Below, in pieces: positions 3,887-46,232 of a DNA stretch of 64,000 nt (positions are counted from its first letter, which is position 1; every line of letters starts with the position of its first letter). This stretch comes from Oikopleura dioica (taxonomy: Eukaryota > Animalia > Chordata). The stretch spans positions 12,772,001-12,836,000 of the forward strand of contig OU015569.1 of the NCBI GenBank assembly GCA_907165135.1, read 5' to 3'. The translations under genes and the position numbers were made by a program. Under the pieces are notes generated by a model. That model saw nothing but the letters and a program-made list of their open reading frames with translations. It did not search any database and was not told the origin of the DNA.

Positions 3887-4604
3887 AGTAGTATATAGGG
3901 TGGCTGTATGTTTCGAAAGGTAAGTGCTCTGTGATTGCTCTATTTCACTGTGCGCGCAATTCAAATTTGGTCCAATCCTCAACCATTAGGGCGGCCGTGT
4001 ACCAGTCGATTACTTCCTCTCTCTCCTCCTCCAGGTAAACAATGCCCACCAAGATGTAAACAACTACTCCAGTCTAAACAAACATCTTTCCTTCAGTGAT
4101 TAGGGCGGCGTGCCATTTCCGCAATTCTTCTAGAGCCAATAACATTTCCTCTCTCCGCCCACAGGTAAACAATCTCCACCAATCAACTTCCGCTCTCATT
4201 CAAGAGTTATTCTAGCGCTCATTTCCTCAGATGAGTAAACAGTGGTCACATTTATCATAACAACTATAATAACAGGTATGACGACATCCCCCACTTCGAA
4301 CAGCAATGACCGTGATCGACCTCAGAAGACTGCCCAAACAATAACTGACCGTGGCAAGAATAAACAATCACTGAAGAATAAACAAGGTAATCAAACCAAA
4401 GGACAAAACAAATTCTCACACACCTTTTCAGATCAACTCAGTCTACTCCTGCAGACAACAATGACTGTATATAATATCTACTGTATATATCCTGCAAATA
4501 ATCAACAAACAATCAAAATCAATTTCAATTACATTTATTCCTCAATGCACTGGGAAAAAACGTATTTCAGCTCAGAATATGTAAAGGGTCGCAGGTTTCG
4601 CACT
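3887..4604 (+). repeat. Left terminal inverted repeat (718 bp)
   Basis: Reverse complement of 45509..46226. The match ends at ...GCAGGTTTCGCACT on both sides, and both copies give identical ORF translations. Confidence 0.97.
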
Positions 4605-4612
4605 GTCAATCA

Positions 4613-5000
4613 TCAAAAGCATCTGTTCAGGAAATCATCAAACATTTCGTCAAATGCAGCGTCCTTTAGAATCTCGTCGACGAGTTTGTAGACTTCTCTT
4701 CGTCTTTGCTTAAAGTCAGATGGTTTCTTTGAAAATTTGTTGACCTCACGCAGGCTAGTCGATGTGTCTTCTCGCGGGATGCCCATTCTATTTCCTCGAT
4801 TCGTCTTGACCTAAGTTTATCTCATAGTACTTACTCTTGTATTTATCAGAATATCTCTCGTAACTAAAAGCTCAAATACCTCTCAAGTTTAAATTCTCTC
4901 TGGTTTGAAGGTCTAAGTGATTGTCTCGGTCAAGTTGTTTCCTGTTTCTCCGTTTGATCCAAACAACCGCATCTAGCATATTCTACGCCTCAACTCATCT
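4613..5000 (-). CDS. Putative spliced terminal ORFan reading outward into the left TIR
   Basis: Last exon open for ~65 codons (VKTNRGNRMG...DAAFDEMFDDFLNRCF*), with the stop 9 nt from the TIR edge. Upstream exon structure and start are uncertain. Confidence 0.35.
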
Positions 5001-6960
5001 ACCAAAGGTCAAAACAATAATTTTGGGTTGCAGATTTGTCTTTTGCATTCATAATTATTAATAAATAGATGCTTTCTGTCTGACCAAAGTGTATAACAAA
5101 GTGTATTCCTGCAATTTTTTGACGCTCAGATGGTCTCTTCCATGATTTTTTTATTGATAGTCATTTCTGCACATTTTAAGAGGATTACTTTTTAGAAAGG
5201 AGCGACGAGTTGTTGCTTCATTTTATAATATTTTATTTTCAACAGTAACATAATAATATTTTTATTGTCGAATTTGGTATATCAAAATACGCTTCATTTT
5301 ATCACATTAAATTATTTTGCATTCTTTCATCGATCTGTAGCTTCATTTTATCATCCCACTAAGTTAGCGAAATTTCATCGATTTGTTGCTTCATTTCATC
5401 TCTTTTTTTTTGGTTTTTTAAAATTTTATGTTTTTTTTGGATTTTTGTTTTATGTGTGGCTGTTGCTCAGTGCGCGCTGCTTTTTGTAGCGCTTGTTCGC
5501 GTCATATCTGCGATAATCCGACTCGAATTCGAAAATTCAACGTCGGTCTTTCCGCTTCAACTTGGGGATTGCGTCATGCCCGCTCTTGATTTCGTCGATT
5601 GTACAATTATCAACAATCGGTGCTATAGTTCCATTCTTTCTTAAGAATGGTGGCTATTTCATCGAAATTGAAATTTGTAGATTAGCGATGATCTTTATCA
5701 GGGCCACAATATCTGTCAATTCTATTATAAACAGGTATGTTGACCGTTGAAATTTTCATCTAATATTTTATATCTCAATTTCATGTAGATTTAAAATTTG
5801 AAATACCACTTGCTGCTTTTCTGTTTATTCTTTATTGATGAACAGAAATACTCAGACAGTGTTATTGCAAAACAAGTGACAATAAATGAATCTCTGTGAA
5901 ATTATGAATTCGTTGTGACTTTCATAAATAGGTCGAGCTTGGTGGCGCTCGCTCACCAGCAACATCGACGACATCTCTTTTGCGCCGTTTCTTTGCGGAA
6001 TAAAATCTGATGTTCTGTGCTAATTTCCTCATTCAGATTTGTCAAATTACAAATTTTTTCAGTTTCTCTAGTGTCGTCTATGAGAGATGCGCTCTTCACT
6101 CTTTTCGATGTCGGATGCCGCCTGTACTTTGCTCTTATTGTGGTAAGTTTGATAGCAGTTTGTCCAAGAGAATTAACCTGTTCTTTAGATTGCGATCCTT
6201 GGAGAATTAGTAACCGAGATGATTTTCCCTGGATTGGCTGAACGGATGCTGACAAACGAAAGTTTCTCGACTGGTCGACCGATTGATAATTTGAATGCTT
6301 TGCTGGGTTGAATGGAAGACGAACTGAGTGAAAGCACAATCTGAACCTTCTAAGTAATATCGCCTCCTCCCCTTTAGGATGTCACAAATTAATCATCTTT
6401 TTATCGCCATCAAATTTTTTTATCTCCGTGCTCGGTTGTTTACTTTTTTTTTCTGACTTGCGTGTAGTTGAAAATTGTTATTTTCATGTTTTATCTCCGG
6501 TCTCTTGTAAATATTATCTTTTTTTTCTAGCTAGAGCACTGTCAACCAGCGGCACTGTAGGTTTTTTAAAATAATTTTGTTTTGGTCTGCGGTCATTCTA
6601 GTTGTACTTTATTCGTGTTAGATTAGGATGTTAGAAAAAAGTTCATCGAAAAACCTTGTTCCTGTTCTGTGAAGTTCAAGCATCTGGGTGCACCACAGTT
6701 TCTATTAAATTTCATTCTGTTCACAAAACTACATGAAACTGTCACACTTACACCTTAATAAAAAAGGACCCACATAATTTCTAGAGTTTGTGTTGTTTCT
6801 TAGCATGAAAAAGAAAATAAGTTTAATTTGAGTAAAAAAGTCTCTAGAATTCTGAGAAGCCCAGGACTATATAAACAAGCGCGCACTGCTCAGAAGTCAG
6901 TTTTACAAATTGGTAAAACAAAAAAACAGTGTCCGCTGCAGATTGCGCGATTTTTTGAAG

Positions 6961-7893
6961 ATGGTCCGAACCGCTACCCGACGAAACCAGAAACGTGCCG
7001 CCAAGGCAGCCAAGGCAACTCCGACTTCCTCGAACTCGGCGCCAGCTAACGTTGTGAAACGAGAACCTCGTCGATGGGCTGCACGATCACCACCTCTTCG
7101 ATCGGCTCGACCGCTCTCAAACGACGAATGGCCAGAACTACCACGATCTTCTTCTTCTGATGAAGCGCCTCCAGCTTCGCCAATCGGTTCGCCACCACGT
7201 GCGCCCGCTACGCCCCGACAAAGTACTCCGAAGAAATCCGACCACCCGCAGAAACTTCGAACTGGTATTCGAATGTTTCAGTTTGACGACATTGGACAAG
7301 AAACTCGTCAAGCGCCTCCTCTTCCCGATCGACCCCCTGTCGGCACTCCCGACGATATTTCTCTTGCTGAAACAACGTCTCTTGATAGGCGTCAAGATGC
7401 GGAAGAAACCGTCCTTCTCAATGACGGGGACGAAACAAAACTTGAAGCCTTCACTTCAGGATTTTTGTTGAAGAGTGACATCGCGGAATTTTCCTCGTTG
7501 TCTCGCTACAACGACGATGTTGTGAAATCTGATTGGTTCTTTCGACCTATTAAGAACCGATCAGCTGTGGATGGCAACTGGAATTTCCCTGCCGACTGTA
7601 AGTCTTTCAACGATGATGTTTAGTAATTGTATTTAGATAATCCAAAGGGAAGTCCATTCGCGAAGGCACTTGGGTACCTGAAACACTTTTACGCTAATAA
7701 AACGGCAAGTTTGGATACTCTCGAGGAGGAAATAAATAGCTGTCAACTTGGTGTGACCCTGGAAACACCGCGTCTCCTAGCCCCGCTGCGAAACATCGAA
7801 CTAGCTGCAGAGGATTCTGAAAGGCAACCCAACATCAATGACACCATCATTGACTGTTTTTATCAAACTGCAGATCGTTCTTTCTTCAATTAA
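6961..7893 (+). CDS. Polinton accessory ORFan (~297 aa), basic/Pro-rich N-terminus
   Basis: ATG 6961; a 39-nt GT-AG intron at 7598..7636 joins the two track ORFs in frame (894 coding nt). Confidence 0.7.
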
Positions 7894-10769: not shown

Positions 10770-10939
10770 CTTTAAATTGTGCTGCTTGCCTGCTTACTAA
10801 CTTATCTTATCGCCTTTTATTCGTGCTATGCTTTGCTTTTGTAAATAGGATTTCAATTTTCAATCGAAATAACCTTACAGACATTGAATCGGATTTCTGA
10901 CGTTTGGCGCTAATAAGCTGACGACTCTGGAGCGACACC

Positions 10940-12594: not shown

Positions 12595-15539
12595 ATGAGT
12601 GAATCATCTAAAAAGAAAAAGGGTTTGAGTCTTAAACCTTCTACTCCGGCGCCTCGAAGTGATATGACTTGGTCTGATGTAGATGGAGAGCAAGAACTTG
12701 ACTCTTCTCAAACTACTTGCTTTCGAAACCAATTCAAAATGGTTAGATTCCTCTTTTTTCGCTTGTCTATGTTTTAGAAATCCGATTACGCGCGAAAGGC
12801 AAAGGTGAAAAGTTATTTGGACCAACTTGAAGGAAAGATTCAATCTGATTTCTTTTTTTATTCAATAAAGAAACCATTTGAATCTTTTAAGATTCGGCTA
12901 TGCCTATAAATCCGCGGAAGAAGACAAAACAGGACAGCGTAATTGACGCTCGGACTGAGGATGAAAAGGCTGCTAATCGCGCGTTGGCTCGGAGTGCGGC
13001 TAGAAAATTTGCGAGCAACCGCGACAGTCCTGCTGGTCCAGCTACACATTCTTCTGACGATGAGGTTGATCGTAATTCCTCTGATAGTGACGTAACTTTC
13101 GTCTCTGAAAAACTTCCAATAACTCCGACTACACCTTCAAAAAGTAAAGTTGTTCGACCGAAGGTAATTCCGACGAAAAAAGCAGCCTATCCTGCGAGAA
13201 ACAAGAAACGCAAATTCTCTTCAAGCGACGAATCTGAAGAACCGATTTCTGAGCGTCGAGCAGTGCGAGGCAAATCAAAGGCAAAATGTGCTTCTGGTAA
13301 AAAGAATGAAAAAGATGCCAGTGAACGATCGCAATCGCCGAAAAGTAAGCCTATTCCTCGCGCCCGACGATTGCAGAATGTTCCCCTTGGAGCGCTTTCC
13401 CAAATGGACTGGATGGATCGTCGGGATCCTAATGTGCCAAAAGGTGACAGTGTCGCACCGCCAAACGAGCCGATCGTCAAGCCGATTTTGGCGCAGAGTG
13501 AGTCTAATCTGCCTCGGGAGATTTCTATGAACAACGCGGTGTTTGAGCAAAGTGGGGTACCTGTTGATCTTATTGAAGGCGACGCCCCTCACATTCCGCT
13601 TAATCTAACGCGAAAATCTGATACGGATAAGGTCCAAGAGCAGTTGGCTTCAATTCGACTCGCACCGAAGTCTGCCAGAAAAAGTCGACACAGCGAGAAG
13701 AATAAAAATACGATTGAATCAAACAAATATCAATCTTCCCTGTCAATGGTACCTGAAGAGACTGAAGAGGAGCAGTATCCTCGCGATCATGAAGATTCAA
13801 TCACTGAAAGCGAGGAAAGCGATGGTGAACTACGAATGAAAATAAAGGGGCTAGAACAGGAGAAACCTATGTGGTATCTCAATCGATTCCAGTTGCGACG
13901 GTTTTTTTCGGCTGCTTATGATTCGAAGAATGGCATTCGACCGAGCTTACGCGGCACGAGAATAGCCAATTTTCTGCAGCGTGTCGATAGAAAGCTCTCA
14001 AATGCAGAACGCGCAACTGCGGAACAAGATGATTCTCCCACCTATCGTGTATTCTTTGAAAATACTCCCAAATACAGTTCTTTCGATCCGTTCTACACGG
14101 AACCTGGTGCTTACACTGGTGTTTATGTTGAATGGGATCAATTGGGCGCTTTCAAACCATATTTTGCGGTGGATGGATTTGGAAATTTCTACATCCGCAT
14201 GCTTAAAATTTGGGTAAGTTCCTTCTGTTACAAAGCTTGCATAATATTAACTCTTAGGTCCACTATCCAAGCAGTGTGGAGGGAGTTGAAGGCGCTTGGA
14301 AACTCGTTGACTTTGCAGATCGTTCTTTGGGACATCCTGCAAAAGTACTAGCAGCTGTCAACAAGATACCAATTTACGCATATCCTTGGCCGACTAAAAT
14401 ACGCATTCGTTCTCTCGACAAAAGCCGTCCACTCACAATTCTGGATCCTAATGGACCTTTCAAGGCTTCTGTTCTGCTCATTAACGGATTTATTCCTCTC
14501 GTTTGCGATCCACCCTACAAAAAACAAGCCGATCTTCTGTTTAACAACCCTGAGGTAATTTCTATATAGTTGATTTTCTTTCTTTTAGTAGTATCTTTAG
14601 GTGTTGGACGTTCTTTGTGACTCTGATATGACAAACGAAAGACCAAATCAATCGCAAGTGGATGCTGTCAATACCCGACTGGAGAACTTCGTCTGGCGGT
14701 GCATTCCAAGTGTCTTTAGGGCTGATCTCTTTGGAGTGACTGACGATAACAACGTCCCTTCGTCTGAGAACAAGACTGTCGAAGAGCGATTCCAGGTTCT
14801 TCAAAATAAATGCGATTCATTGTTTGGTGCCAAAGAAAGCCAGCAAAATAATGATCCATTTCAAACTAAGAAAAACCCTATTGACGTCGCCGTCGACCAG
14901 ATTCTTGAGGCTCTCCCGCCTATTTTCAAGCGGTATGAAGATTTCTGGCCTTCAAAAATGCTCATTGAAGCGCTTCTTTACGCAAACAGCACAAAGTGTT
15001 TCACCGAATCCACTGACTTGATGGCTATGGTGAGTTTTATTGTTACAAGTGTCATCATAACCTTGATTTAGATGGGCGTTTCCCGCGGAATCTCTGCAAA
15101 AATTATCGCTTGGCAGATTTGGGCTCAGTATCGTCCCGAAGAACTTGACAAAAAAGCCGTCAAAAAGGAGCTCATGAAAGTTCAGAAGAAGCTTGAAAAA
15201 GGTCTCAAGACGAAAAATTTAGGCGTGCCCACTCCAAGTGTCATGCATTCTGTTGCCCCTGAAAAATCTATACCATTGAAGAAAGGTAACTTACAGTCCT
15301 GATTAAATTCTAAAGTTTTATTAGCTGTGGAGTCCGCACGACCAAATAAACGTAGCCAAAGTACCGCTGACACTCTCGAGCAAGAGATTCCTGATCCTTT
15401 GTTGGTTGGTGGTACTCGACGCGGAGTGAATCGCAATGAAAATCGTTTTGGTTTCTTTAAAACACACCCCAAATCATCAACTACTGCGCCCACACCTCCA
15501 TCTCTTATCTCATCTTCAAACTCCGATGATTCTTCTTAA
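12595..15539 (+). CDS. Large multi-exon ORFan: disordered basic/acidic N-half, apparently globular C-half
   Basis: Track ORFs 12595, 12900, 14276, 14601, 15072 and 15327 are joined by GT-AG micro-introns (e.g. KIW|VHYPSS, NNPE|VLDVL, LMAM|MGVSR). Confidence 0.7.
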
Positions 15540-15585: not shown

Positions 15586-17372
15586 ATGACCCGTTTATTC
15601 GGACTTATTTTGTTTTTACCGTTGTGTCTATCGATGTTTCCGTTCGACTGTCCCGATTTTATGCATGCTCCGAGCAATCATAAACAGTGGTGTATGTTTC
15701 GAATTGGTGTCGATCATTGTTATGATGGTGATGAGTCAACAAGTACTACCACTCGTCCAGCTACGCGGAAAACAACAACAACCACCGAGGAAGCAAAGAC
15801 GAGTACAACAACTGAAAGTACGAAAGCTGCAACGACTACTCTGAAGACCTCAAGTTTCACTCCTTCTTCTGCGATTAGCACTTCTACCATAGAAAAGACA
15901 ACGACTGAGGAAACAAAGACAACGACTGAGGAAGCAAAGACAACGACTGAGGAAGCTAAGACGACAACTGAGGAAGTTAAATCACCTACTACAGAGAGTA
16001 CCGTCGCTTTCACGACTTCTTCTTCGTCGTCCAGTCCAAATACAACAAGCGCAAGTCCAATTGAAGAAACAACTTTTACTGACTCGATTGATTACGTAAC
16101 CGAATCAATGAATTCCTCGGCGGAAACAATCAAGCCAGATTTTTCACCCCTGAAAAAAAATTTGTTGTTCAGGTGAGCTTTGTTGTTAAGGTAGCCTTGG
16201 GAACGTGGTGGCAAAATGATGCATGGTATGATAATTTTCATGGTGGCCCAAAACCCTATGGTGGTATCTGAGACATTTCATCTACCACCATGCAATTTAA
16301 CCCTACCATGGTAGATTTTGCCACCACGTTCCGAAAGGCACCATGCGATTCCAAAAAAAAATCTGGGCGGAAAAAAAACCTCGAAATTCCGCAAGTTGAA
16401 AAATTTGAAATGATTAATTTGCGTTTTTCGCGCGTCCTTATATACAAATCTATTTCCGCTAAATATAGGTTAAATAAACAAATGAGTCATTTTACTCACC
16501 GAACATTTCCTGCATTTTTGTAAAATCAAAACAATTAGGTTCATTTCCAGGAATCGTTTCCGCTATTTTAGTTAGAACAAATAAAAAAACTGGGGAATGA
16601 ACGAGAGTAACCTCATAATCAAAACACTTCATGACCTACTAACCTATTGACCCATATCTTATCAACGTTATTTTAGCGCGTTTACTTTCGCTTTACGATT
16701 GACACTGTTAACGGCGATTGTTTGTGTGTTTCGGCAGTGGTATTTGGCGTTCACCAATCGCGATCAAGCCGATAAAGACTTTATCACACGATTCAACACC
16801 GCAACACGCTTTGTTTTTCGTGAAATTCTCTGCCTGCGTCTGTTTGAAAAACCAAAAATGGTGTACAACATAAGCTACTCTCGCGGTGGAATTACTGGAG
16901 CTTCTGCAACTACAAATATTCCCGGCGAAAACTATGCTTCCGATAACGTTGACACTCACCCACCTGGATATATTCCAGGCCGAAGAACTATTCAGCAACC
17001 ACCAGCAGTTAACTCATCTCGAGCGGACAATGTCATTTACTTCGATGAAACTGTTACGTTGGAAGAGGCTCGTCGTAAAACTTACGAATCAAGCCTTAAA
17101 TTTGGAATCGATAAAGAACGCGTGGATCAAATTTTCAGCAAAGATTGGGTCCCTGATGAACAGACGGTTGATCAGGAAAATACAAGTGCGGAAAAGACTG
17201 ATGAAGTATCGCTAGATCACGATCTAGAAAAAACGAAGACGTGGAAAAAGAGCCGATGGCAAGTGACGCTTTCCTACCAAAGCCAATATGTAAGTCTTAT
17301 AATGAGTTATTCCATTATTACTCTCGTTTAGCACAAGATGAAAACCACAAAAAGTCGAAGTTTGCGCGAGTG
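15586..17372 (+). CDS. Putative type I membrane glycoprotein: signal peptide, small Cys domain, Thr-rich mucin stalk, TM helix, tail (may extend past 18000)
   Basis: MTRLFGLILFLPLCLS signal-like start, TTEE(A/T)K repeats, and intron 16173..16676 joining in frame to LLFSAFTFALRLTLLTAIVCVF. Confidence 0.65.
16196..16338. repeat. Short foldback/MITE-like palindrome in an intron
   Basis: ggaacgtggtggcaaaat ... attttgccaccacgttcc inverted arms with internal catggt/accatg repeats; no clear TSD. Confidence 0.6.
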
Positions 17373-26893: not shown

Positions 26894-27676
26894 TTATTTA
26901 AATGCCCAAGCAGCAGGATAGGTTTGAACAATTATTTGATAGGCTAAAATTCTATTTAAACGAACATTGCTCTCTTCAAAGACATCTCGACGGTGAAAGG
27001 TGTTTTTTAAAAGGGCGTTGTTGAAATCTTCAGGTTGTATTTCTTCCAGGAGTTGTTCCAAATCGGCCTCATTCCTAAGATATTCCGTAGAATTACAGCT
27101 CCCCCAACTATTTGGATAAATGATGGAATATTTGGAGCGAATTTCAGGCTCACCAGTATCCGTATTGAACCAAGTCCCAGTAGAAACGGTGCTGTAGAAA
27201 GCGTCAACAGAGACTCTCAACAGTCCAGTGAAATTTCTGCCTATTTTGTCCACCAAGCCCACATAGTCCTTGTCGTTCAACAATGTTATTGTGTACCGAT
27301 TGCAAAGATGAGCGTAGTTGCCTTTTGGATCCGCGCCAAGAATAAGCCGATTATGACGAAAATTGTTTCCTAAATTTGTTAAAATCATAAACATGTCTTT
27401 TATACTTATTAAATGGCGCTGTGGAAAATGTCTTGTGCCACTCCCTTCAATCAGTGCTTCGAGTTCTTCAGGCTCAAAATAATCATCGTCAGGCCATTCA
27501 ATTGGGACATGCTTTGATAGAAAATCTAGTTCCCAAGCAACATTAGATTTTAGTCCATCATCTGACAGTGAGAAATTAGGTTCTTTTGATCGTCGAGGAT
27601 AAAACCACTCTATTTGTTTCTTAGACAGATTGAAATCTGTTTTGATATGATAAAAACGGTCCATAAAATCCGCCAT
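26894..27676 (-). CDS. Stand-alone ORF resembling the N-terminal (terminal-protein-like) region of Polinton pPolB
   Basis: C-terminal half YSIIYPNS...YLRNEADLEQLLEEI...EESNVRLNRILAYQIIV recalls the conserved segment preceding the exonuclease in Polinton pPolBs; recognised by eye only. Confidence 0.5.
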   Translation of the reverse strand: MADFMDRFYHIKTDFNLSKKQIEWFYPRRSKEPNFSLSDDGLKSNVAWELDFLSKHVPIEWPDDDYFEPEELEALIEGSGTRHFPQRHLISIKDMFMILTNLGNNFRHNRLILGADPKGNYAHLCNRYTITLLNDKDYVGLVDKIGRNFTGLLRVSVDAFYSTVSTGTWFNTDTGEPEIRSKYSIIYPNSWGSCNSTEYLRNEADLEQLLEEIQPEDFNNALLKNTFHRRDVFEESNVRLNRILAYQIIVQTYPAAWAFK

Positions 27677-27947
27677 CGATAAACCATTAGACGGTTTGTC
27701 CGTGTCAATATTTTTGCGCGTCGTCTCGTTGTTTTTCGTATATATTTTATAGTATCAAATATACTTGCCATTTGTAAGTCGACTTCTTCCTCCGAAGAAG
27801 GTACTGGTGGAAGTGAAGAAGTCGACGTTGGTCTTGACTCCGTCATCATAGAATTATCTTCAGGAAAGACCGGAGATAAATTAGAAGACATTCTTAATTC
27901 CTAAATATTTTAACGAAATAAAAAAACTCTACATTCGTGACAGTTAA

Positions 27948-33605: not shown

Positions 33606-33710
33606 TTCATTTAAAATTATGCGTGAAATAGATTTTATTTCTGTTTTTATAGATACAGTGTTTACAGAAATAGCGACTACAGGGAAGAAGAAAACGAGGG
33701 CGCTCGGCGG

Positions 33711-35523
33711 CTATCCACGAGGTCTTTTGGCGTTTCGTTTGGCTGTAGCGACTGGAACTTGTGATAGAATAACAGCCTCTAAAAAACAGTGAAATAGAAA
33801 TTCGATATTGAGTTTTACCTTGCTTGACAGAATCAAGAATAAGAGCGTCCACTGGAATCCTTGTCGTCATAGCACTCCAATTTTCTGTTGTTGTTTCTTT
33901 ATTTTCGTAATTAGCGAACCCTGCGAGCGGTTTATCGAAAGTAATTCGTATATTAACAGTCGCGTGAATTCCTTGCATTGGAGCGAATGACATTGGAACC
34001 ATCCAATTCTCCGTTATAAATTGAAAATAATCCAGTCCTTCACCAACAGATTTATTTTCATATCTTCCATTATGGTGCAAAAAGTTGATGTAGTGATCTC
34101 TTGGCGATTTCCACGGTGTACCAAAGGAAAATTTGTTGTCCACAAGAATAGAGAACTCCTTGATAGTAAACCCTTCTTCAAACAAAGTCGTTTTCGTTAT
34201 GCACTGATCAAAGGATCCAGGACATCGAGCGCCTCGCATTCCCGTAAAAATTAACCATTCAGGGAGGGGGCCAGACGAAATTTCAAATTCGTAAGTTTGC
34301 AATCCAGGACTCAAATTTTGCATAATCATACGTGGATAATAAAACGGTATTTTTAATTGACCTTTAACTCCAGTTGTTAGAGGCTTTTCTTTCGCTTTTG
34401 GCTCGCAAAATACACTTTCAAGCATTATATTTTTTAAGTGATATTTCTCAAAAAACCGTTTACTAGGATATTCAACAGCACAATTTTTCTTCCAAAAATG
34501 AACGTATTTTTTTTCATTTTCCTCAACGATGTTAAACTTAGGTATTTTACAATAGACCATGTGAGGTCTAAAACTTCCCGCTTGAAGTATAGTATTCTTC
34601 GGCGTAGCTTGTTTTCTTCCAAGATCAAGGATTTCGATGAAATTGATGTACTCGCCTGTCTCATACTTGGTTTTACCATCGTCGTTGACCTCCAAACAAT
34701 CGCAGTCGTCAGGATACTCATGTTTAACGGAATTATTCATTAGTAAAAGGTCAGCATGATACGGAAATTTAATCTTTGACACAATTTTAGATTTTGCATC
34801 TAACCCGTAAATATTATCGTAATCAGTACGACATTCTGTAAACTCAGAGAACTTTTGCAAAAATAACTTAGCATCATTTACTTTTACCAAGAAAGAAACT
34901 CTTGACCCAGGGGGTAGAACTTTTTCCTGACGCGCTAAGCCATGAGTTATCGGAGTCCGCAAATTGTAATCATACCAAAGTACATCATAAGAAAGAGCGG
35001 CGCCATCGGTTGTCAATTTGATTGTTTCAGGTTCAGGTTTCCAATTCTTTTCTGCATACTGTTGTCTATTCTCAACAAGAGTTTTTCCATTGTGTTTCAC
35101 CCGTTTCGTTTCAAGTTCATCGCTGTCAACATCGAAAGCGTCAAAATGACCCTCCACAAACATTTCGATTTCCTGTGCTTTAGGTGAAAAGTTAAGTTTC
35201 TTTATAAAGTGATTGAAGAAGGCGTACTCCAACCCATCAGTAAATGTAGAAAAGATAGTACTGTCCAGAATCTTGACTTCAAACTTATTTACCATCTTTG
35301 CTGCCACATCATTATCAGGAACGAAATTCGAAGGCATCTCCATTTGATAATGAAACATACATCGATCAAGTTTTATGGGAAGCTTATCCTCAGGAACTGT
35401 AAAACAAATTTCGTTTTCAAGGGGATGTGTTGCTAATCGCATAACTACTTTGTATCCAGTAAATGGATCTTCGACTTTCTTTTTTGGAACGTAATAAAGA
35501 AGCTGTCCATAATTTTCGGTCAT
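33711..35523 (-). CDS. Putative double-jelly-roll major capsid protein (Polinton PY-like), ~590 aa
   Basis: Position in the core module and PY-like motifs (EYAFFNHFIKKLNFSPKAQ; FEISSGPLPEWLIF...PGSFD). The 40-nt intron 33779..33818 gives the C-terminus ...AKRNAKRPRG*. Confidence 0.7.
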
Positions 35524-35726
35524 TTTCGTTAACTAAAATTTATTTTAATATCAATGAACAATAAAATGATTGAGATGAGCGAAAAGGAACACAAAAATAA
35601 TCACATGAATTTTGATTGTTAGAAATATAACAAAGTAAAGTCCCAAGTTCGATTTAAAAAATAAATCAAAGAATTTAAAAATATGTCCGAGTCCGTTGAG
35701 CAAAAGAGAAGGAATTCTTTTATTTA

Positions 35727-35906
35727 TTATCGGCGCCGTCGTCGTCGTCGAGGATACTTCCGTCTCCTCGTTGTTGTTTTCCGACGAGGCCGACGTCGAA
35801 CCAATCTCGAGGTCCTCCGTTTCGGTCCTGGTCTCCGGCGACGTCGCGTAGTTGTCCGAATTCGGGAAAGTTGTGGTCTCAGAATGAACGATCGAAGACG
35901 AGTCAT
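35727..35906 (-). CDS. 59-aa arginine-rich, protamine-like protein (below the ORF-track cutoff)
   Basis: MTRLRSFILRPQLSRIRTTTRRRRRPGPKRRTSRLVRRRPRRKTTTRRRKYPRRRRRRR*: 28 Arg, 3 Lys, no acidic residue; AATAAA directly follows the stop. Confidence 0.7.
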   Translation of the reverse strand: MTRLRSFILRPQLSRIRTTTRRRRRPGPKRRTSRLVRRRPRRKTTTRRRKYPRRRRRRR

Positions 35907-35965
35907 CCTTGTTAGTTTCTTCGTCGACGAACAGAGAGAATAGGTCCGTTATCTAAAATATATTC

Positions 35966-38065
35966 TCAAGATTCAGAAAGCGGCAACACAAGATTGAGTT
36001 CGTTTTCATAAAACCGTCGGTCTAGAGTTTCTCCATTGGGCCCTTCTAATTCAAATGTGAAAACACGAGCTCCTTTATTGATGTGAACGATTTGATAGAG
36101 CTCTTTTGACCACTTTGAAACCGAGCCTTTATCGAAAATTCGCTGCATGCTTGGATCTTTGACTTTCCTCACCAGATCACCCAAGTGTAGTCTACTTCCA
36201 GTTTGACGTTTCATTTTTGAGCGCAAACTCTCCAAATAATCGAAAAGCTGTGGTGCATTCGTTCGATTTACATCGCTAGGTCTCATGTTTATTGAGGAAT
36301 GAGGAGTATTATTGATTGCTTGATTCACATCATCCAATATATGTGTCCATCTCTTGACCCCGTTTTGAGCCGTAAAAGCTCTTGCTAAACGAGTTTCCAA
36401 CGTGCGACTAAAAATAAATAACTAAAAATTTGCTAAAACTTACTTAAATCTTTCCACCATCGCTGCCTTGTGACGACCAACTAAATGTACCGGAGTCATA
36501 CCCCACTCTTTCAGTAGATCCTTAGTTGGACCCAAAAATTCACTACCCTTATCTGAACAAAAGAATGTATGTCCAGGTAAATCTAGTCGCTCAAAAATAT
36601 GTTTCAATTCTTTCGAAGTTTCCTCCGCAGTCAAAGTCTTTAACATTCTAACAAAACTTTGTCGAGATAGTGCATCAATAACACATAGAATATATCTATA
36701 GCCATTATTAACGCGACTGTAATTTTTATACGCAGCAATAGTATCTGCAAAAAGTGTAGTATAAAGTCCGCTAGCAATAATGGGATTTCGAGTAAAATTA
36801 TAGCGAAAAGGTTTATGAAGAGAAATAGGCTCGTTCATGCGCTTAAATCGTTTCAAGTCAAAACCACTATAATAAGATTCTTTATTAGGGTTATACATTA
36901 AATCGAGAGCAAAAGGAGGTCTTCTAACTGTATCACTATTATTGGGATCATTTTGTCCAGAAATCTGCGATGTCTGCGACTCCTCGATTCTCGACGTCAT
37001 TGTCTCCCCATCGGAGTCATACTCGGATTTCTCTCCGTCGGAACTATCTCCGGCTCCCTTATCTCCCTTCTTGTGTTTATTACTAGCGGACTTTCCGGAT
37101 TTAGACTTTCCTGACTTAGATTTGCTTGGGGGTTTTGATACTGTAGTGACTCTTCCAACAGATCGCTTGGATCGCTCATTCTGTCGCTTAAATTTGTACG
37201 CCGGGTTCTCGACAATAACAGACTGGGATCGTCTGGAATTGGCTCGTCTGGCGTTGTTATGTCTTCCACCCGATTCTTTTCTAGCATTTTTAGATTTTCG
37301 TCTGACCTCATAATCGGATTCGTCGGATTCATACGAGTCTGAATCTTCATCATTTGAAGTTGTTTCGGAATCGTAATATTTCCGCTTTCGTTTCGAGCTC
37401 CTATTACTTGTGTCATGAATTGAATCCCGCCATTTTCTGAAATCAGAGCTGGTGATAGTATAACCGTCGGATTTATTGGCTTGTCTTTTAGAGCGTTTGA
37501 ACGGTTGCCGCTTATTTCGTTCATCTTCTTCGCTACCACTTTCGTCCACGTCTTTATATAGTCGTTTTCGCCCGCGTTTCGTTCTAGAGCGGACGACAGT
37601 TGGTTTCTTCTTTCTCTGGGGCTTTTTAAACTTGCGCTTTGACCGAGATTTTTCAAATTCTTCGCTGCCCTCGGAATCATAGAAGTCCCTATGTTCTTGC
37701 TGCTGATACCTTCTCTGGCCACCGGCGATTTTGTACTGACCACTCTCTTCATCGGACTCTTCGTCTTCCTCCTCGCTAAATTTTTCTTCTTCATCTGAGC
37801 TTGAATACGCTCTTCTCTTTCGAGATTTTTTTGATGATCCTCTAGGAAGGGCTCGGTTGCATAGTCCTGCAACCATTTTGGCCGTGTCGTCTTCCTCCGT
37901 GTCATAGTCAGGGTAATTTTCCTCTTTTGTCTTAGGAGCTCGGACTCTAACGCGATTAGTTATTGGATTAATTTCCCAGTAAGAGCATATATTTTCCATT
38001 TGGGACAGGGAGAAAAAACATCCTCCGTTTAGGGGGGCTTTACTTCCAGTATTTAATGTACTCAT
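35966..38065 (-). CDS. int: Retroviral-like (RVE) DDE integrase, ~687 aa, with long charged N-terminal extension
   Basis: FADTI / CSDKGSEF / MVERFNRTL triad, restored by the 36-nt intron 36408..36443; NNTPHSSINMRP and GDLVR...FYENEL motifs typical of Polinton integrases. Confidence 0.95.
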
Positions 38066-38432
38066 GTGGACTTAAAATTTTAAAATTGCTCAAACTCAAT
38101 CTTGTAAAATAAAAGAGATAATTTTTGAAATAAGTTACCTGTGTCATTACCTTTTAAAAGTTTAAAGAACTTTTTCCGAGAGATGTGATTTCTCCAAAAG
38201 AGAAACAGAATATGAAAAAAAGCGCTCAAGGTCAAGACTTATAAACAAGAGGGAACAGCGCCATCTGACACATCATCTAAAACAACAGTATAAATAAACG
38301 TGTCCGATCATTCTTGCTCAAAGTACGTGATGTTGAACCTTGAGAAAAAAGCAAAAATTGTAATCAACTGTCCACTCAATATTTAACAAGAAATTTTAAA
38401 TACGACAAAATCAAAGAAACGAAGAAAGCACT

Positions 38433-39158
38433 ATGTCAACTATCATTACAAAGTTCTTGCCAGACATTCGTTTTCAACACCCGTGCTCTTTATTTATAAG
38501 TGGAGCTACGGGAAGCGGTAAAAGCAACTTTGTAAAGAATTTAATAGAATGCGAAGGTATTCGTGGAGAAATGACAGATATATATTATTTTATGCCACGC
38601 CTGGAAACAATTAATATTCGACCACCAGCACATCAAGAATTGTTTTTGATGGAAGGTTTGCCAACAAAAGAATGGGTAGATGACACATTTAAGACAGAAA
38701 ATAATAACAACGTGATTGTTGTAGACGATCAGTGGTCACAAGCAGTCAATAGTCCCGTAATTGAGTACCTTCTCACATACGGTCGTAGACATCTCCGGCT
38801 GACTCTCATCTTTATAAGTCAGAACTTCTACGAAAAGTCAAAAATATCCATAACTCTCAGGTAATAACACATTTAAAATTATCCAACCAGATATTTCAGG
38901 AACTGCATGACAATCTTTATATTATTTAAAAATAATACAGACACAGGCATTAACAAAACAGTAGCGACGAAAACAGGGGAAGTAGAAGCGTACAACGCGG
39001 CAATGAGGCTTTTCAAAGAGCGCAGAATCCCGACCTTCTACTATGTGATCCTGGTAAGAGACATCAACCACCCAGATCAACCACGTGTTATGACGAATTA
39101 CTTCGGGGAAATCCCTGGCCTTGGCGGCGCACCTTGGCTATTTGACGTTCAACAGTAA
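38433..39158 (+). CDS. A32/FtsK-HerA family genome-packaging ATPase, 228 aa
   Basis: Walker A GATGSGKS, Walker B IVVDD, GRRH, ISQN; 39-nt intron 38861..38899 gives ...TLRNCMTIFILFKN. Confidence 0.93.
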
Positions 39159-39504: not shown

Positions 39505-40458
39505 TTAAAGAGTGCCCAATCGTAGTCTTCTTCGTTGTGAAATGTTGGTCGAAGTGCATGCCGAGTAAATCCCAAAAGTGACTACAAAGTACTTAATCAG
39601 AAACAAAAGATAAATTACATTTTCATTATCATTGATTATTTGCCGTTCCAAGCAGATGTTTTCAATACGATGCGCGAATCGCACAAAGGCGCTTATCGGT
39701 CCAAAGTAATTGCAGAAGGCGTAAGTACGGAACAATTTTCGGGCGAGTTGCCTGAGGATCAGCAGTCGCGTGTCAGACATTTGGGCATAATCGTAGTCAT
39801 CTTTCTTCAATCCAGCGATTCTTAATAAAGAGACAACGCGTCTGTCGATTTTATCTTTGTCAGCTTGATTATTCTTTCGATAATCTGGGTTTCGCTCAAG
39901 AAGACAGCGCACGAAGACTTCGGCATAAAAAAGAAATACAGATGTCATCGTAAAAGAATATTCGCGAATCAATGTGAGATTAAAAAAGACATCGTCCAGA
40001 TACGGGTAAACAACCTTCTGATAATCGCATGTAAAGCTGTAGGACATGTCGGCGGTCTTTTCCCGAGAATAGGTAAAGCGACGATAGACAATCATTGGTT
40101 CATAAGCCAGGGACCCATAGGAAGTACTTCCATCGACACAGTGATGACAAATAGACGGACGTCGGCGAACTATCACAAATTAAAAAACTATGTTTTGAGC
40201 TTTGGTATTACCTAAATCTTCTCGGAGGTAAATAACAATTCGTGGGTGGAAAGTGTTTGTTTCCCTGTTGTAATCCTGGAACAGATGAAATCCAAAGCTC
40301 ATCTTGCGGGTCGTAAAAGCTTCCTTAGCAATAACCTCTGGTATCGGGTACCCGGAAGAACCTCGGTGCCACCCATCAAAAATGTTCTCCCTACGCGAAA
40401 TAACTGGAAACTTAACGCGCACAAGTTCAGAGAGAGTTTCTTCGAAAATCAGGACCAT
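39505..40458 (-). CDS. ~300-aa ORFan beside the ATPase
   Basis: The 42-nt intron 40170..40211 joins the two track ORFs in frame (REDL|VRRRPSICHHC); 3' end uncertain. Confidence 0.65.
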
Positions 40459-40635
40459 CTCGATAAACTCTAACAGCTAAGCCAAAATTACGAAACGAAA
40501 CTACGAAAAACCTCAACCAACTCTCGACCGCCTCACACAACAATCTCAAACCGAAAAAGGAAATTAAAACAAAGGTGAGATACAGGAAATATTTTTATTT
40601 TAATGCAGCTGAAAAGCGCAAAAGTTGCTTCTGCT

Positions 40636-41508
40636 TTAGTTGCTTTCGGTAGACCAATTTCGCCCAGCAAGCGTGAAAGAGCGATTCGACGGAGTGGTGA
40701 ATTCTAGTCGCCATCTCTGGTTGCAAATATCACTCCATAGATCGTGGTAGCGCCCATCGATTTCCCGCTCCTTGGCTTGAATATAGCCCTTCAACTGGAG
40801 CTGTTCTTCTCGCGTCAATTTAGATTTGAGAAGATTGTAGATGGCCGAAGGGGAAGGATCGTTTGGTTGGGTGGCGGGATCGATTGGGGCAGACCCAGCG
40901 AAATCGACGACTAAAATTAATTATTTTCAGCCTGAGAGACATTTAAAACTTACATTCGCGAGCTGGAGAAAGAGGCTCTCGTTGGTCGGGAGCGGTCGTT
41001 TCTTCGCCGACGCTAGGTCGAGGAGGGAGATTCGGGTAGACCTGAGGGGCTTGAAGGCCACTTGGTCCAGCCTCTTCTGGAAGTCGGAGCTGGGGGTCAG
41101 AGTTTCGAGATGGCCCCCTAACACGGAAGTGATTTGGGGGAACCTCAGTGTCCATTGGAGCAGAAGCGATCGGGGACGTAGGTGTCTGCTCGGGCTCCGG
41201 TTGATGAACAGGGGAGCTAGGAGCGAGATGATCGGTCGCTTCAGGAGCGGCGGCAACTTGTCGTCGGTTCTTGGTAAAACCGAATTTGGGGATCAGTTTC
41301 CCTTTGCCACGTGGGAGTTCTTCGCTTTCGGATGAGGAGGAATTGGGCGCATCGATTGAATGGAGAGCCAATTTCGCCTGGAGTAAGTGCGCTTCCGCGC
41401 GAGAGATCGCAGAAGCGAGAGCGGATCGCTTGCTTGTCGCAGATCGAGTAATTCGCTAACATAATTGTAAATTCGAAAAAAATTTCGAATACGGGTACTT
41501 ACAGTCAT
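40636..41508 (-). CDS. Multi-exon Pro-rich ORFan
   Basis: 2-codon first exon ATGACT|gtaagt spliced to RITRSATSKRS..., continuing into the 40943 and 40636 track ORFs. Confidence 0.55.
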
Positions 41509-41913
41509 CGGGAAAGTCGAAAAAAAGGGTTGGGGTGGACTTTATCCAAATGCCGAGTTTATCCAAAGGCCGACTTTATCCATATGCAGAGTTTATCCAA
41601 ATGGATAAAGTCGTCATATGGATAAACTCGGCATTTGGATAAAGTCCGCCACTTTTTTGCTAAAAATTTTCTAGAACAAAGAAGTTACTTGCGAGAATGG
41701 ATAAACTCGATCACTTTTTTATAAAAGTGGATAAACTTGATCATTTTTAGTAAAAATTGGATAAAGTCGATAATTTTTGAAAAAATTTGGATAAAATCGA
41801 TCAATTTTAATTTATAAATTCATAATGAAGACCGAGTCAACTTCATCAATTCTTTAAAGTCACCCCCCTCCCAGATGAAAATTTTTCTGATAATAATTGT
41901 GTCAGATGAGTAA

Positions 41914-42378
41914 TCTTTGTCGCGCCGCCAATTCTCAATGCTCGGCGTGCTCAAGCTCAGCAAAAATTCAAACCCGGCGTCAGCCGTGCTAAAGCTTAGT
42001 TTGATTTAGTCTTTTTCATGCTCAGTCGTGATCTAGCTAAGTTTGATTGAGCATTTGCGTGCTCAGCCGTGCTCATGCTCGTGAATATCTGAAATGTGTG
42101 CCAAATTGCTCTGAGCACATATAATTTAAATAAACTTATAATTCAAATATTGGAAGCAAATCCGTTCTCAGATGTGCTCAGAGCAATTGGGCACACATTT
42201 CAGATATTCACGAGCATGAGCAAGGCTGAGCACGCAAATGCTCAATCCAACTTAGCTAGATCACGACTGAGCATGAAAAAGACTAAGTCAGACTAAGCTT
42301 TAGAACGGCTGACGCCGGGTTTGAATTTTTGTTGAGCTTGAGCACGCCGAGTACTTAGAATTGGCGGCGCGACAAAGA
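41914..42378. mobile_element. MITE with ~205-bp TIRs and TAA duplication (PIF/Harbinger-like)
   Basis: Near-perfect palindrome tctttgtcgcgccgcc...ggcggcgcgacaaaga around a ~50-bp spacer; TAA at 41911..41913 and 42379..42381. Confidence 0.8.
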
Positions 42379-42887
42379 TAACGGGAGTCACTTAATAGCG
42401 CCGCCTTGCGCCGTCCTTCGCCGCCCAGTCCCGCTTGATATTGTTCTCCACGAAGATTTTTGGCGTTTCAATCATGAATTTTTTATGTTTTCTTATCAAA
42501 ACTTTTATTCTCGTATGTTCAAATAATTTCACCAACAGAAAAAAAGAAAACTTATGATTTAGGGCGTCAGAAAAGGAAGTCAAAATTATCTACAGATTTT
42601 GGCATAAAATCATCAATTTATTAACCGCGTGGGACGAATCGTACATTCCAATGTCATTTAAGACTTTAGGGGCCCGGTATTCCCAAACTATAAATCCGAT
42701 TACTTTGAAATTTTAAATGTGGGTTGGCTCATGCCTTCTTAGTAACTTGTGCAAATGTGGAAGTTTTATCACGGCTCAGTTGCACCTGACACAGGATTAA
42801 GTCTGGCCTACTCGAGCGCCCGCTGAGATTTTTACTGTAAAAACGAACCAATTTGTTTGTTTGAGCTATTAAGGGAAGGTTACAATT

Positions 42888-43060
42888 ATCCTGAGGATCA
42901 ACCTCAGGATACCCTCTAGAAGTGAATCCTGAGGATTGTCCTCAGGATACCTTTCATAAACCTATCCTGAGGATAAGACACAGGATACACTCTAGAAACG
43001 AATCCTGGGTATCAGATCATAAAATTTCTTCGATAAAATTAGTCCTGAGGATAAGAAAAA
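42888..43060. repeat. Cluster of short TCCTGAGGA/TCCTCAGGA quasi-palindromic repeats
   Basis: About six copies in both orientations. Confidence 0.7.
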
Positions 43061-44620
43061 ACTGACAGATTCAGTCCCAGAGTTTACTACAAGACAGGCG
43101 CGGAGCTCTCTCGACTCCTCTTTTCGTGAGAGTGGCGTGGTTGAGCGGAGCGCTTTGATTGGTTGCAAGCGAAAAAGCACAAAAAGAAGAAAAAAACGAG
43201 CAAGAAAGAGGAAAACGCTAGAATAGAAATTCGAAAGAGTTTTGAAATAAAAGCCCGTCAATTTTCTAGCTTAACATCATCGTAATAAAAGACACGGTTT
43301 AGTTTTAGCGATTCAATGGAAAAATTTCGAGAAATCGAGAGAGTAAGATTTGAAATCGCTCTAAAAGGAAAATTTTCAATAAAATTTTTTTTTAAAATAC
43401 CACATTTGAGTTTTGCGTGCATTTTTAGGTAGTATTGTTTTTGAAATGAAAATGATCCTACTACGCATTTAGGCGCTACGAAAGTTCAAATTCATAGCTT
43501 ATATCCTTAAGCACACGACGGGCCAGAGGCCCTTACGCGCGCATTTTCTGATAGAGAACTCATGGGGTTGGCGGGGCCCAACTCTTGCTGTTGTTCCGAA
43601 CAGTTAGCTTGGCCAGAATTTGGTCAGACGAGACCCGGTTTGTACTGAACCGGGCGGCGCAGGGCGGCGCTATTCAGTACACGCCAAGATTACTCATCTC
43701 ACACAATTATCATCAGGAAAATTTTCATCTGGGAGGGGGTTGACTAGGTTGGGGTGTTCGGTGAATCTGGGCACAATTGGCCTACACAACTTCCAACTCC
43801 CCGTTTCCGACCAGGTCGCTTTTTCGATCGTTCTTATGACTTAGCGGAAGCCTTCAGCGATACGATCTGTAACTTTCTTAGGCTGTGAGGGGGGTTGAGT
43901 ATAATGTTCTATATGATTTGAAAGGCATTATTTTAGCATTATCAATTAAAAAATGATCGACTTTATCCATTTTCTACAAAAAATGACCGACTTTATCCAA
44001 TAATATGAAAAAGTGATTGATTTTATCCATTTTCTGAAAAAATCCTTTGTTCTAGAAAATTTTAGAAGAAAAAATGGCGGACTTTATCCATCTGCGGAGA
44101 TTATCCAATTTTGACTTTATCCATTTGGATAAACTCTGCATATGGATAAAGTCGGCCATTGGATAAACTCGGCATTTGGATAAAGTCCACCCCAATCGAA
44201 AAAAAGTCGAAACGTCCTTCTTCTAAAGCTTGCAGAGAGCAACTGATTACTTTTTGCATTTTAGACCTGATAACGACAACAATTCTAGAGAAAAAATGGT
44301 GTTTTTCACTTTAAAATTCAATGTTTTGATCTTTGCAAAACATGTTCTAGAGACGATATTTAGCATAAAAAACAGCATTTTTACCATTATTTTTCAATGA
44401 TTCCGCAATAAAATAGAATCTACCGGATAAAAAATGTTGTTTTTTCTACAGTAGGTCGAGACCTCGATAAACAGACTTCACTCGCAATTCAAATAAATTC
44501 CGACGGTGGAAAAATCTTTTACGGATGTTTATGCACCCGAGAAGGGGTATTTATTAACGAGACCATCAGGAAAAAACAGCTAAATCTGCTGAGTTGAGTT
44601 CCACGTAGCTTCTGAATGTT

Positions 44621-45457
44621 GTGATAACTTTGGATGAAGGAAATGATCTTGACCGAGTAGATCAAAAGAAACAAATCATACACTTGAACAAACGACACGA
44701 GAATTCTTTTTTAAACTTTACAATGGAAGTACAAAGCCAGAGAAAAGAACAAGATGTCAAGCGAGAAATCGAAGTGGTACAACATCCGCGCGATAAAATC
44801 AAAGCTTCAAGAAAAACTTACAAAGTAATGTATGAGAAACTACTTGATCAGCTGCTTAGGACCCAACCAGGAAGATTCCACTCACACTGCAACGGTCTAC
44901 TTTGGGCTATCGGTAACAATGAGGACGGAGCTCCAAAGTACAGTGCAAATCGGCTCAAGTCAATCATGGATAAGTCACCAGACGTGGATTACGACCATAA
45001 TCTCCGAAAAGAAATTGAAGCTGGCGCTGAACGGAACAATAGTGAAGATTTTGTTATTGACCACAATACCTTTGATTATTATGCTAGGTACGAGGACGGC
45101 GACTTCAACGTGCTCTACATCAGACGAACCGCCAAAGGAGGCGAACAACCATTTCCCGATTATGACACACGCGACTATTCCGACGACTCTGACGACAATT
45201 TCTTCCAATCAGATGACGACATCAGTGAAGACAGTGACAAGACCGTATCAGTGCGAATCGGAGAGCCAGATGAAAGTGAGTCAAGCTGCAACTGTGGCAA
45301 CATATTCCTCGAAGGCAATGACACCGACAGTGAGTACTCAGACGAAAGCACGGACGACGACTGCGAAGATGGGACAGACGATGATATCAGTTGCGAGAGA
45401 CTTGAAACGGCAGAGGCAGATGCGGATGCAACGGTTAAAGCGACTAAAGGTGCTTGA
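44621..45457 (+). CDS. Terminal ORFan (278 aa) with Asp/Glu-rich C-terminus, reading into the right TIR
   Basis: Uninterrupted ORF; AATAAA at 45574..45579 inside the TIR. Confidence 0.7.
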   Translation: MITLDEGNDLDRVDQKKQIIHLNKRHENSFLNFTMEVQSQRKEQDVKREIEVVQHPRDKIKASRKTYKVMYEKLLDQLLRTQPGRFHSHCNGLLWAIGNNEDGAPKYSANRLKSIMDKSPDVDYDHNLRKEIEAGAERNNSEDFVIDHNTFDYYARYEDGDFNVLYIRRTAKGGEQPFPDYDTRDYSDDSDDNFFQSDDDISEDSDKTVSVRIGEPDESESSCNCGNIFLEGNDTDSEYSDESTDDDCEDGTDDDISCERLETAEADADATVKATKGA

Positions 45458-45508
45458 ACGACGATTCAGAACAACGCAACTAATACGAAATATTATTGCA
45501 AACAGAAA

Positions 45509-46226
45509 AGTGCGAAACCTGCGACCCTTTACATATTCTGAGCTGAAATACGTTTTTTCCCAGTGCATTGAGGAATAAATGTAATTGAAATTGATTTTGA
45601 TTGTTTGTTGATTATTTGCAGGATATATACAGTAGATATTATATACAGTCATTGTTGTCTGCAGGAGTAGACTGAGTTGATCTGAAAAGGTGTGTGAGAA
45701 TTTGTTTTGTCCTTTGGTTTGATTACCTTGTTTATTCTTCAGTGATTGTTTATTCTTGCCACGGTCAGTTATTGTTTGGGCAGTCTTCTGAGGTCGATCA
45801 CGGTCATTGCTGTTCGAAGTGGGGGATGTCGTCATACCTGTTATTATAGTTGTTATGATAAATGTGACCACTGTTTACTCATCTGAGGAAATGAGCGCTA
45901 GAATAACTCTTGAATGAGAGCGGAAGTTGATTGGTGGAGATTGTTTACCTGTGGGCGGAGAGAGGAAATGTTATTGGCTCTAGAAGAATTGCGGAAATGG
46001 CACGCCGCCCTAATCACTGAAGGAAAGATGTTTGTTTAGACTGGAGTAGTTGTTTACATCTTGGTGGGCATTGTTTACCTGGAGGAGGAGAGAGAGGAAG
46101 TAATCGACTGGTACACGGCCGCCCTAATGGTTGAGGATTGGACCAAATTTGAATTGCGCGCACAGTGAAATAGAGCAATCACAGAGCACTTACCTTTCGA
46201 AACATACAGCCACCCTATATACTACT
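45509..46226 (-). repeat. Right terminal inverted repeat (718 bp)
   Basis: Reverse complement of 3887..4604; ends ...TATATACTACT, followed by TSD CTTATC. Confidence 0.97.
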
Positions 46227-46232
46227 CTTATC

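Follow-up and report, generated by a model that had tools for sequence, protein, structure and literature searches.

The window analysed here, a stretch of 64,000 nucleotides from the Oikopleura dioica assembly OKI2018_I69 (GCA_907165135.1, contig OU015569.1, positions 12,772,001 to 12,836,000 of the forward strand), lies in the X-specific region (chromosome XSR) and carries a Maverick/Polinton insertion that measures 42,340 bp within its terminal inverted repeats (TIRs). The two TIRs differ at none of 718 aligned positions, and the insertion is flanked on both sides by perfect copies of a 6-bp target site duplication (TSD), a match expected by chance with a frequency of 1/4096. The identical TIRs and perfect TSD reported in a preliminary description of this DNA are thus borne out, as is its estimate of about 39.7 kb for the element without a nested transposon (42,340 minus 2,666, or 39,674 bp). 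Six of the eight defining features of Mavericks/Polintons were found, namely a protein-primed polymerase (pPolB), an rve integrase, TIRs, a TSD, a major capsid protein (MCP), and a packaging ATPase; a penton protein and a protease were not found. The element is therefore a clear member of this class, and it represents a real Maverick that was recently inserted as a single unit. The term "young" that had been applied to it fits the insertion, given the identical TIRs, but not the state of the element, whose pPolB contains a premature in-frame stop. In addition, an inverted repeat of 101 nt with 91% complementarity (3455-3555 and 46254-46354) brackets the insertion just beyond the TSD, and the landing site seems to lie inside a foldback or miniature inverted-repeat transposable element (MITE)-like structure.

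The coding core is confined to positions 27951-39158 and is as compact as first described, although its measured span is about 11 kb rather than 12 kb; neither tRNA genes nor Rfam families were detected in the window. Its largest gene encodes pPolB, which, read in a single frame, comprises approximately 1,850-1,885 codons and matches Pfam DNA_pol_B_2 with 64.6 bits against a cut-off of 25.8, with relatives that carry PF03175. The upstream open reading frame (ORF) piece of this gene (1,618 aa) aligns over 100% of its length, at 44% identity, to two uninterrupted proteins of 1,842 and 1,879 aa encoded on marine metagenome contigs, and pPolB also aligns to O. dioica gene models on PAR, chr1, and XSR. 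The N-terminal region of about 1,000 aa matches no Pfam family and no PDB profile. Because the alignment to relatives extends over the full length at 44% identity, this extension is a conserved trait of the lineage, common to the metagenomic and the other O. dioica relatives.

The MCP is uninterrupted, with neither introns nor frameshifts, and has 22 homologues at 33-50% identity. Its AlphaFold2 model (pLDDT 72.6, pTM 0.73) was matched by Foldseek to the MCPs of Sputnik, iridovirus, mavirus, faustovirus, and PBCV-1 (E 1e-9, probability 1.0), as well as, at the fold level, to capsid models of virophages, nucleocytoplasmic large DNA viruses, "MELD virus", and "Adintovirus sp.", and the predicted structure identifies it as a double jelly-roll (DJR) capsid protein of the kind that characterizes Mavericks/Polintons. 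The integrase assignment is weaker but consistent: the rve match reaches 22.3 bits (curated cut-off 32.6), and in another Maverick model of O. dioica (P0006), the integrase part of which shares 56% identity with this protein, the same region of the rve profile is matched with an E-value of 3.6e-5. The neighbouring gene on the opposite strand scores at the borderline of Pox_A32 (22.5 bits versus a cut-off of 22.8) and just under the cut-offs of Adeno_IVa2 and FtsK_SpoIIIE, and its translation displays a P-loop and an acidic Walker-B-like motif; its product is probably an A32/FtsK-type genome-packaging ATPase. Among the approximately 60 ORF pieces of the element, Pfam matches were limited to the pPolB, rve, and ATPase families plus two chance-level matches, Histone (0.023) and DUF3246 (0.017). 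Sequence and profile searches of PDB returned nothing above chance for the MCP, the pPolB profile, the ATPase, or the integrase, or for the ORFs of 848, 486, 383, 286, and 224 codons.

Other genes in and around the core are less readily interpreted. Between integrase and MCP, two open frames overlap on the same strand in a purine-rich stretch, one of them Arg-rich (KR fraction 0.48); the second frame is acidic, rich in Ser and Thr, and ends in a hydrophobic segment. Only one of the two can be the real product, and the "protamine-like protein" proposed earlier is tied to a frame that exists but competes with another. To the right of the ATPase, an unassigned minus-strand gene that abuts the nested transposon contains one in-frame stop and represents a candidate place for a missing virion gene.

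When each gene span is read in one frame, in-frame stops are found in several core genes, and they appear to differ in nature. Two occur in pPolB, which, like the MCP, shows no frameshift (none over 2,500 codons of the two genes together). One is opposite a residue in all four relatives compared, with no gap within 20 columns and with 10-21 identities per 30 columns on each side, and probably represents a true premature stop, a base-call error being less likely; the other lies within a 12-codon insertion relative to the relatives, and this stretch may be a mini-intron. Because pPolB has this one demonstrable in-frame stop, the copy is probably not autonomous. The integrase contains two in-frame stops, both in one short stretch, and the ATPase three, likewise clustered in a short stretch, and these clusters would fit short introns better than independent mutations.

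Introns are documented in one arm gene only, the largest, XSR.g17020 (P0001), for which the gene model of the source genome, used here for its spliced protein as for that of its chr2 paralogue (P0033), contains four short introns. The first is 73 nt long (GTAAGT...TTTAG), and two 42-nt GT..AG introns are common to the model of the chr2 paralogue, one of them holding an in-frame stop; the introns of this gene are real-looking and spliceosomal. Introns whose length is divisible by three leave neighbouring ORFs in the same frame, and among adjacent ORF pieces on the coding strands 15 pairs share a frame versus 8 that do not, where one third would be expected to do so; nine of the same-frame pairs are separated by a single codon. 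The 42-nt introns explain part of this excess, and the rest may comprise either further mini-introns or nonsense codons. Stop-codon recoding was considered and rejected, as the gain in ORF length from treating any one stop as sense was no greater than that seen in the control strands and the flanks, and the stops are of mixed type. The element had been called intron-rich, which holds for one arm gene with two paralogue-shared introns but not for the intronless MCP, and the donor hexamer GTAAGT is not enriched on the coding strand of the arm (10 versus 6.5 expected).

More than half of the element is occupied by an accessory arm of about 23 kb, which is densely coding: 14 ORFs of at least 150 aa lie on its plus strand, compared with 0.34 expected from shuffled sequences, and three on the minus strand. 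Approximately 35 ORF pieces, taken from the arm and from the right-hand region of the element, gave no match to a Pfam family. The translations are largely of low complexity (Ser/Thr/Pro/Arg/Glu-rich), and several contain signal-peptide-like or hydrophobic segments. The product of the cluster at 12891-15071 is basic and disordered in its N-terminal part and looks structured in its C-terminal part, and that at 15586-17331 begins with a signal-peptide-like segment followed by a Thr-rich domain, part of which is encoded by a 21-nt tandem repeat in four copies, with a hydrophobic span in the next ORF piece. The 848-codon ORF that forms part of XSR.g17020 has no strongly hydrophobic segment, and its structure model, derived from a four-sequence alignment, reaches a pLDDT of 30.6. 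Two membrane glycoproteins had been claimed for the element; the signal-peptide-like, mucin-like, and hydrophobic segments are indeed visible, but the evidence is composition and hydropathy, so these proteins are best regarded as candidates, and a membrane-associated virus is a possible reading of the same features. The coordinates of all features are given in the table.

Features of the Maverick/Polinton element in the O. dioica window (positions count from the first nucleotide of the window)
Feature	Position	Strand	Evidence or remarks
Left TSD copy, CTTATC	3881-3886		Read directly; identical to right copy
Left TIR	3887-4604		718 nt, 100% complementary to right TIR
Accessory arm, about 23 kb	4605-27800	mainly +	Densely coding; no Pfam family
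ORF cluster, Pro/Ser/Arg-rich, probably disordered product	6856-7890	+	Translations; no Pfam match
ORF cluster, Ser/Thr/Gly-rich, then hydrophobic membrane-span-like segment	8604-9779	+	Translations, hydropathy; no Pfam match
ORF cluster with second-largest arm ORF (486 codons)	12891-15071	+	No Pfam or PDB sequence match
Candidate mucin-like type I membrane protein	15586-17331	+	Sequence features only
Single-exon gene, 163 aa (P0040), annotated in source genome	20091-20582	-	Exact look-up
Largest arm gene, XSR.g17020 (P0001, 1,282 aa, spliced model)	22757-26802	+	100% identity of 848-codon ORF
286-codon ORF downstream of pPolB	26894-27754	-	No Pfam match, no PDB sequence match
pPolB (protein-primed polymerase)	27951-33605 (outer bounds)	-	Pfam DNA_pol_B_2, E 1e-17
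MCP, 638 aa	33607-35523	-	Double jelly-roll fold; uninterrupted, 0 in-frame stops
Two overlapping open frames between integrase and MCP	35554-35952	-	Translations
Integrase (rve core plus C-terminal domain), 699 codons, one frame	35966-38065	-	Pfam rve, E 1.6e-4
Probable A32/FtsK-type packaging ATPase, 241 codons, one frame	38433-39158	+	Pfam Pox_A32, E 8.9e-5
ORF pieces abutting nested insertion	39505-41455	-	No Pfam or PDB match
Nested non-autonomous DNA transposon, 2,666 bp	41530-44195		83-nt, 99% inverted ends; no long ORF
282-codon ORF, very acidic product (D+E fraction 0.24), reads towards right TIR	44609-45457	+	Translation
Right TIR	45509-46226		718 nt, 100% complementary to left TIR
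Right TSD copy, CTTATC	46227-46232		Identical to left copy

The arm is part of the element and not ordinary local host DNA. It lies inside the TIRs and the TSD and is free of a MITE-like motif of the host, which occurs in 18 copies in 21.7 kb of flanking sequence and in none in the 42.3-kb element, from which it follows that the arm moved with the element, as the preliminary description had proposed for the extra genes. If the flank copies are counted as about 10 independent MITEs placed at random, the chance that none would fall inside the element is approximately 2e-5. The MITE-like family itself has the core motif CCTGACTCAGGTTTTC, with 18 copies versus 0.02 expected, distributed at 381-3243 and 46832-63098; the copies often form close inverted pairs, and all of them are located in the host flanks. 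Apart from the coding 21-nt tandem repeat, no additional repeats of 30 nt or more, whether inverted or direct, are present in the interior of the element, and nothing therefore marks a second large insertion. No paralogy was detected among the arm ORFs or between the arm and the flanks. Codon composition divides the arm into two parts: the G+C content at third codon positions (GC3) is 0.42-0.49 in the ORFs at 6.8-15 kb and 0.32-0.40 in the plus-strand ORFs at 15.5-26.8 kb, compared with 0.34-0.36 in most core genes, a hint that the two halves of the arm may differ in origin, the left one being the exception.

Relatives of the arm genes are few. In a full HMMER scan of 1.84 billion representatives, the 848-codon ORF retrieved three relatives besides its own model, two of which are encoded on JGI/ENA metagenome contigs. 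A cluster-mate of one relative is an unspliced ORF of 980 aa with 23% identity over residues 235-833 (E 9e-21), and the globular part of exon 1 of XSR.g17020 coincides with the region that has distant metagenome homologues. The third relative, O. dioica chr2.g6159, is 61% identical to the C-terminal 494 aa of XSR.g17020. Exact look-ups in the protein collection recovered one of the 19 window ORFs, the 163-aa gene P0040, for which BLASTP identified an 81%-identical cluster-mate, chr2.g6157 (P0041). The two chr2 genes are thus diverged paralogues of two arm genes and occur in the same order as in the arm, and the chr2 locus could be either a further element or a remnant, or else the host locus from which cargo was captured. 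These results modify the earlier count of about 15 spliced ORFans: the arm is densely coding, but only one of its genes has documented splicing, and relatives exist for two or three of them.

Proteins related to pPolB and the MCP (33-50% identity) are encoded elsewhere in O. dioica, on chr1, PAR, and XSR, as well as on marine metagenome contigs; the other Maverick loci of O. dioica are chr1 g1345, g1462, and g2762, PAR g12375, and XSR g14646-7. The relatives reveal a lineage that has the long pPolB in common, together with the adjacency of genes, integrase being followed by MCP and MCP by pPolB. In the ENA metagenome collection, the pPolB relative P0025 and the 5'-truncated MCP relative P0018 each report a longest contig of 26,656 bp; if both lie on one contig, about 20 kb would extend beyond pPolB, a hint only that the relatives may be large too. 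Further relatives encoded on metagenome contigs are P0036, P0017, and P0028.

Two further observations concern the nested transposon and the right flank. The nested transposon contains arrays of 17-nt and 30-nt subterminal repeats, many of them of the GGATAAAGTC type, together with an 11-bp direct repeat at its borders and an internal palindrome of 211 nt (95%, 41910-42382). Further to the right, a fragment of a host gene at 53248-54030 on the plus strand codes for the C-terminal globular domain of fibrinogen (Pfam Fibrinogen_C, E 1.4e-42), and weaker, duplicated pieces follow downstream as partial repeats at 56772-57882.

Comparison with known systems places the gene set within the Mavericks and their viral relatives. 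Intact vertebrate Mavericks are 12,723-24,620 bp long (mean 16,862 bp) and possess TIRs of 46-1,447 bp, 6-bp TSDs, and eight intronless ORFs (PMC8097293). The Oikopleura element shares with them pPolB, the rve integrase, the DJR MCP, the packaging ATPase, and the 6-bp TSD, as well as TIRs of hundreds of base pairs (718 here), gene modules on opposite strands, and accessory regions that flank the core. It differs in its size of 39.7 kb (42.3 kb with the nested transposon) versus 12.7-24.6 kb, in an accessory region that occupies more than half of the element, in at least one intron-bearing gene, and in a pPolB of about 1,850 codons, and no penton or protease was recognised in it. Nematode Mavericks contain 2-5 kb of intron-bearing, GC-richer cargo along with a gB-like fusogen (Widen et al., bioRxiv 10.1101/2022.07.12.499685). 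Here, too, non-core genes that bear introns and differ in composition are found between TIR and core (XSR.g17020 being the intron-bearing gene), and membrane-protein genes, candidates in the present case, would suggest an enveloped or membrane-interacting particle in both. In contrast to the 2-5 kb with WASP proteases and KRMA kinases in nematodes, the arm described here measures about 23 kb and has no recognisable family, and a class III fusogen could not be demonstrated in the element.

Adintoviruses and MELD viruses, for which a size class of 10-50 kb has been stated (Starrett et al. 2021, PMC8502044), share the animal-associated set of pPolB, integrase, DJR capsid, and FtsK-like ATPase, and the MCP model matches their capsids at the fold level. 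Arg-rich pX-like core-protein domains and membrane-active accessory proteins have also been described for them, and tunicates are not mentioned in that paper. In contrast to adintoviruses, the element is known here only as an integrated copy, and the searches gave no sequence-level match to named adintovirus proteins. With respect to size, Polintons/Mavericks have been given as "10-40 kb" and "up to 40 kb" (PMC10175614), polinton-like viruses as 14-40 kb (PMC12220804), and genomes of Preplasmiviricota as smaller than 50 kbp (PMC11161782). The element is therefore at or just above the recorded Maverick limit and within the range of the phylum; it is far larger than typical animal Mavericks (vertebrate mean 16.9 kb), but with 40 kb already given in a review (PMC10175614) it stands at the top of the known sizes and is not twice as large. 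What is unusual is the share and nature of the accessory DNA and the very long pPolB, whereas intron-bearing cargo and envelope genes are already known from nematode Mavericks. In the literature searched, Mavericks of O. dioica are mentioned as a repeat class only ("MAV", PMC5240408), and no description of the architecture of an O. dioica Maverick was found.

Taken together, the reading that we favour, with a probability of about 0.72, is that the element represents a recent and probably non-autonomous copy of an Oikopleura-lineage Maverick/Polinton, that is, an endogenous adintovirus-like DNA virus (Preplasmiviricota) whose arm serves as an accessory module. The element entered the X-specific region as a single unit of 39.7 kb, producing a 6-bp target duplication as rve-integrase insertions do, and the 2.7-kb non-autonomous transposon was gained later or already before insertion. 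The core of about 11 kb carries the genes for replication (pPolB), integration (rve), capsid (MCP), and packaging (ATPase). By analogy with the family, replication of the linear genome would be protein-primed and start at its identical TIR ends, an icosahedral capsid would take up the product, and the integrase would integrate it. The arm encodes some 8-15 proteins, most of them disordered or of low complexity and some of them candidates for mucin-like membrane proteins, and is best regarded as a lineage-specific accessory (host-interaction) module, part of which may be captured host DNA. A more far-reaching proposal, which we consider unlikely, is that the element belongs to an undescribed lineage of adintovirus-like appendicularian viruses of about 40 kb, with a pPolB of 1,850 aa and a spliced, mucin-bearing arm, which would still circulate in the sea, the source of the metagenome contigs that encode its relatives, and occasionally enter the Oikopleura germ line.

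Several points weigh against the favoured reading. The contiguity of the region depends on one assembly, and the Pfam scores of integrase and ATPase are below the curated cut-offs. Among the approximately 60 ORF pieces, Pfam and PDB sequence searches recognised no penton protein, and no Ulp1/adenain-like cysteine protease was recognised at E-values up to 0.05-0.1, a search that a diverged or split gene would escape. That the arm belongs to the lineage is a conclusion drawn from protein tables, no MCP or pPolB match comes from chr2, where the paralogues could be ordinary host genes, and GC3 in the left half of the arm is nearer to that of the one host gene in the window (0.50) than to that of the core.

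The last two points lead to a rather unlikely alternative, in which a Maverick of ordinary size captured a large block of host genes, so that the arm or its left half would be host-derived cargo. The cargo of nematode Mavericks, also intron-bearing, GC-richer, and located beside a TIR (bioRxiv 10.1101/2022.07.12.499685), provides a precedent, and the spliceosomal introns of P0001, the host-like GC3 of the left half, and the chr2 paralogues of two arm genes without accompanying MCP or pPolB matches all speak for such a capture. However, the largest arm gene has distant, unspliced long-ORF homologues on marine metagenome contigs, as the core genes do, no arm ORF matches Pfam, although conserved host genes often do so, the 23 kb nowhere contain the MITE of the flanks, and GC3 in the right half of the arm resembles that of the core. 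It is decidedly improbable that the element is instead an old, decaying pseudo-element, in which many of the single in-frame stops that separate same-frame ORF pieces are nonsense mutations and the TIRs were kept identical through gene conversion. The excess of same-frame ORF neighbours, including those one codon apart, the proven stop in pPolB, and the mixture of stop types, as mutation would give, agree with decay, but pPolB and the MCP have accumulated no frameshift, the MCP is intact, and the TIRs are free of differences; moreover, at least some same-frame neighbours are explained by paralogue-shared mini-introns (GT..AG, of a length divisible by three), and the stops of integrase and ATPase are clustered as in short introns.

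Least probable is an assembly artefact or composite, in which unrelated sequences were joined, or TIR fragments bracket host DNA, and no 42-kb unit ever moved. The region is known from a single assembly, and long perfect repeats can mislead assemblers, but a perfect outer 6-bp duplication would be expected only from the insertion of the whole unit in one event, the interior offers no repeats that would allow a mis-join, no host MITE is present inside, and gene models of the source genome run through the region.

The genome of O. dioica is among the most compact in animals, and because of this compactness an insertion of 42 kb whose ends are perfect is conspicuous. Should the arm be a genuine module of the virus, the size range of animal Mavericks would extend in the direction of adenoviruses, with genes that are spliced and may include some for membrane proteins, and the element would bring a chordate case into the discussion of whether Mavericks are to be seen as transposons or as viruses that are still infectious and act as vectors of gene transfer. 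If the arm is captured host DNA, the captured cargo would exceed the 2-5 kb found in nematode Mavericks several times over.

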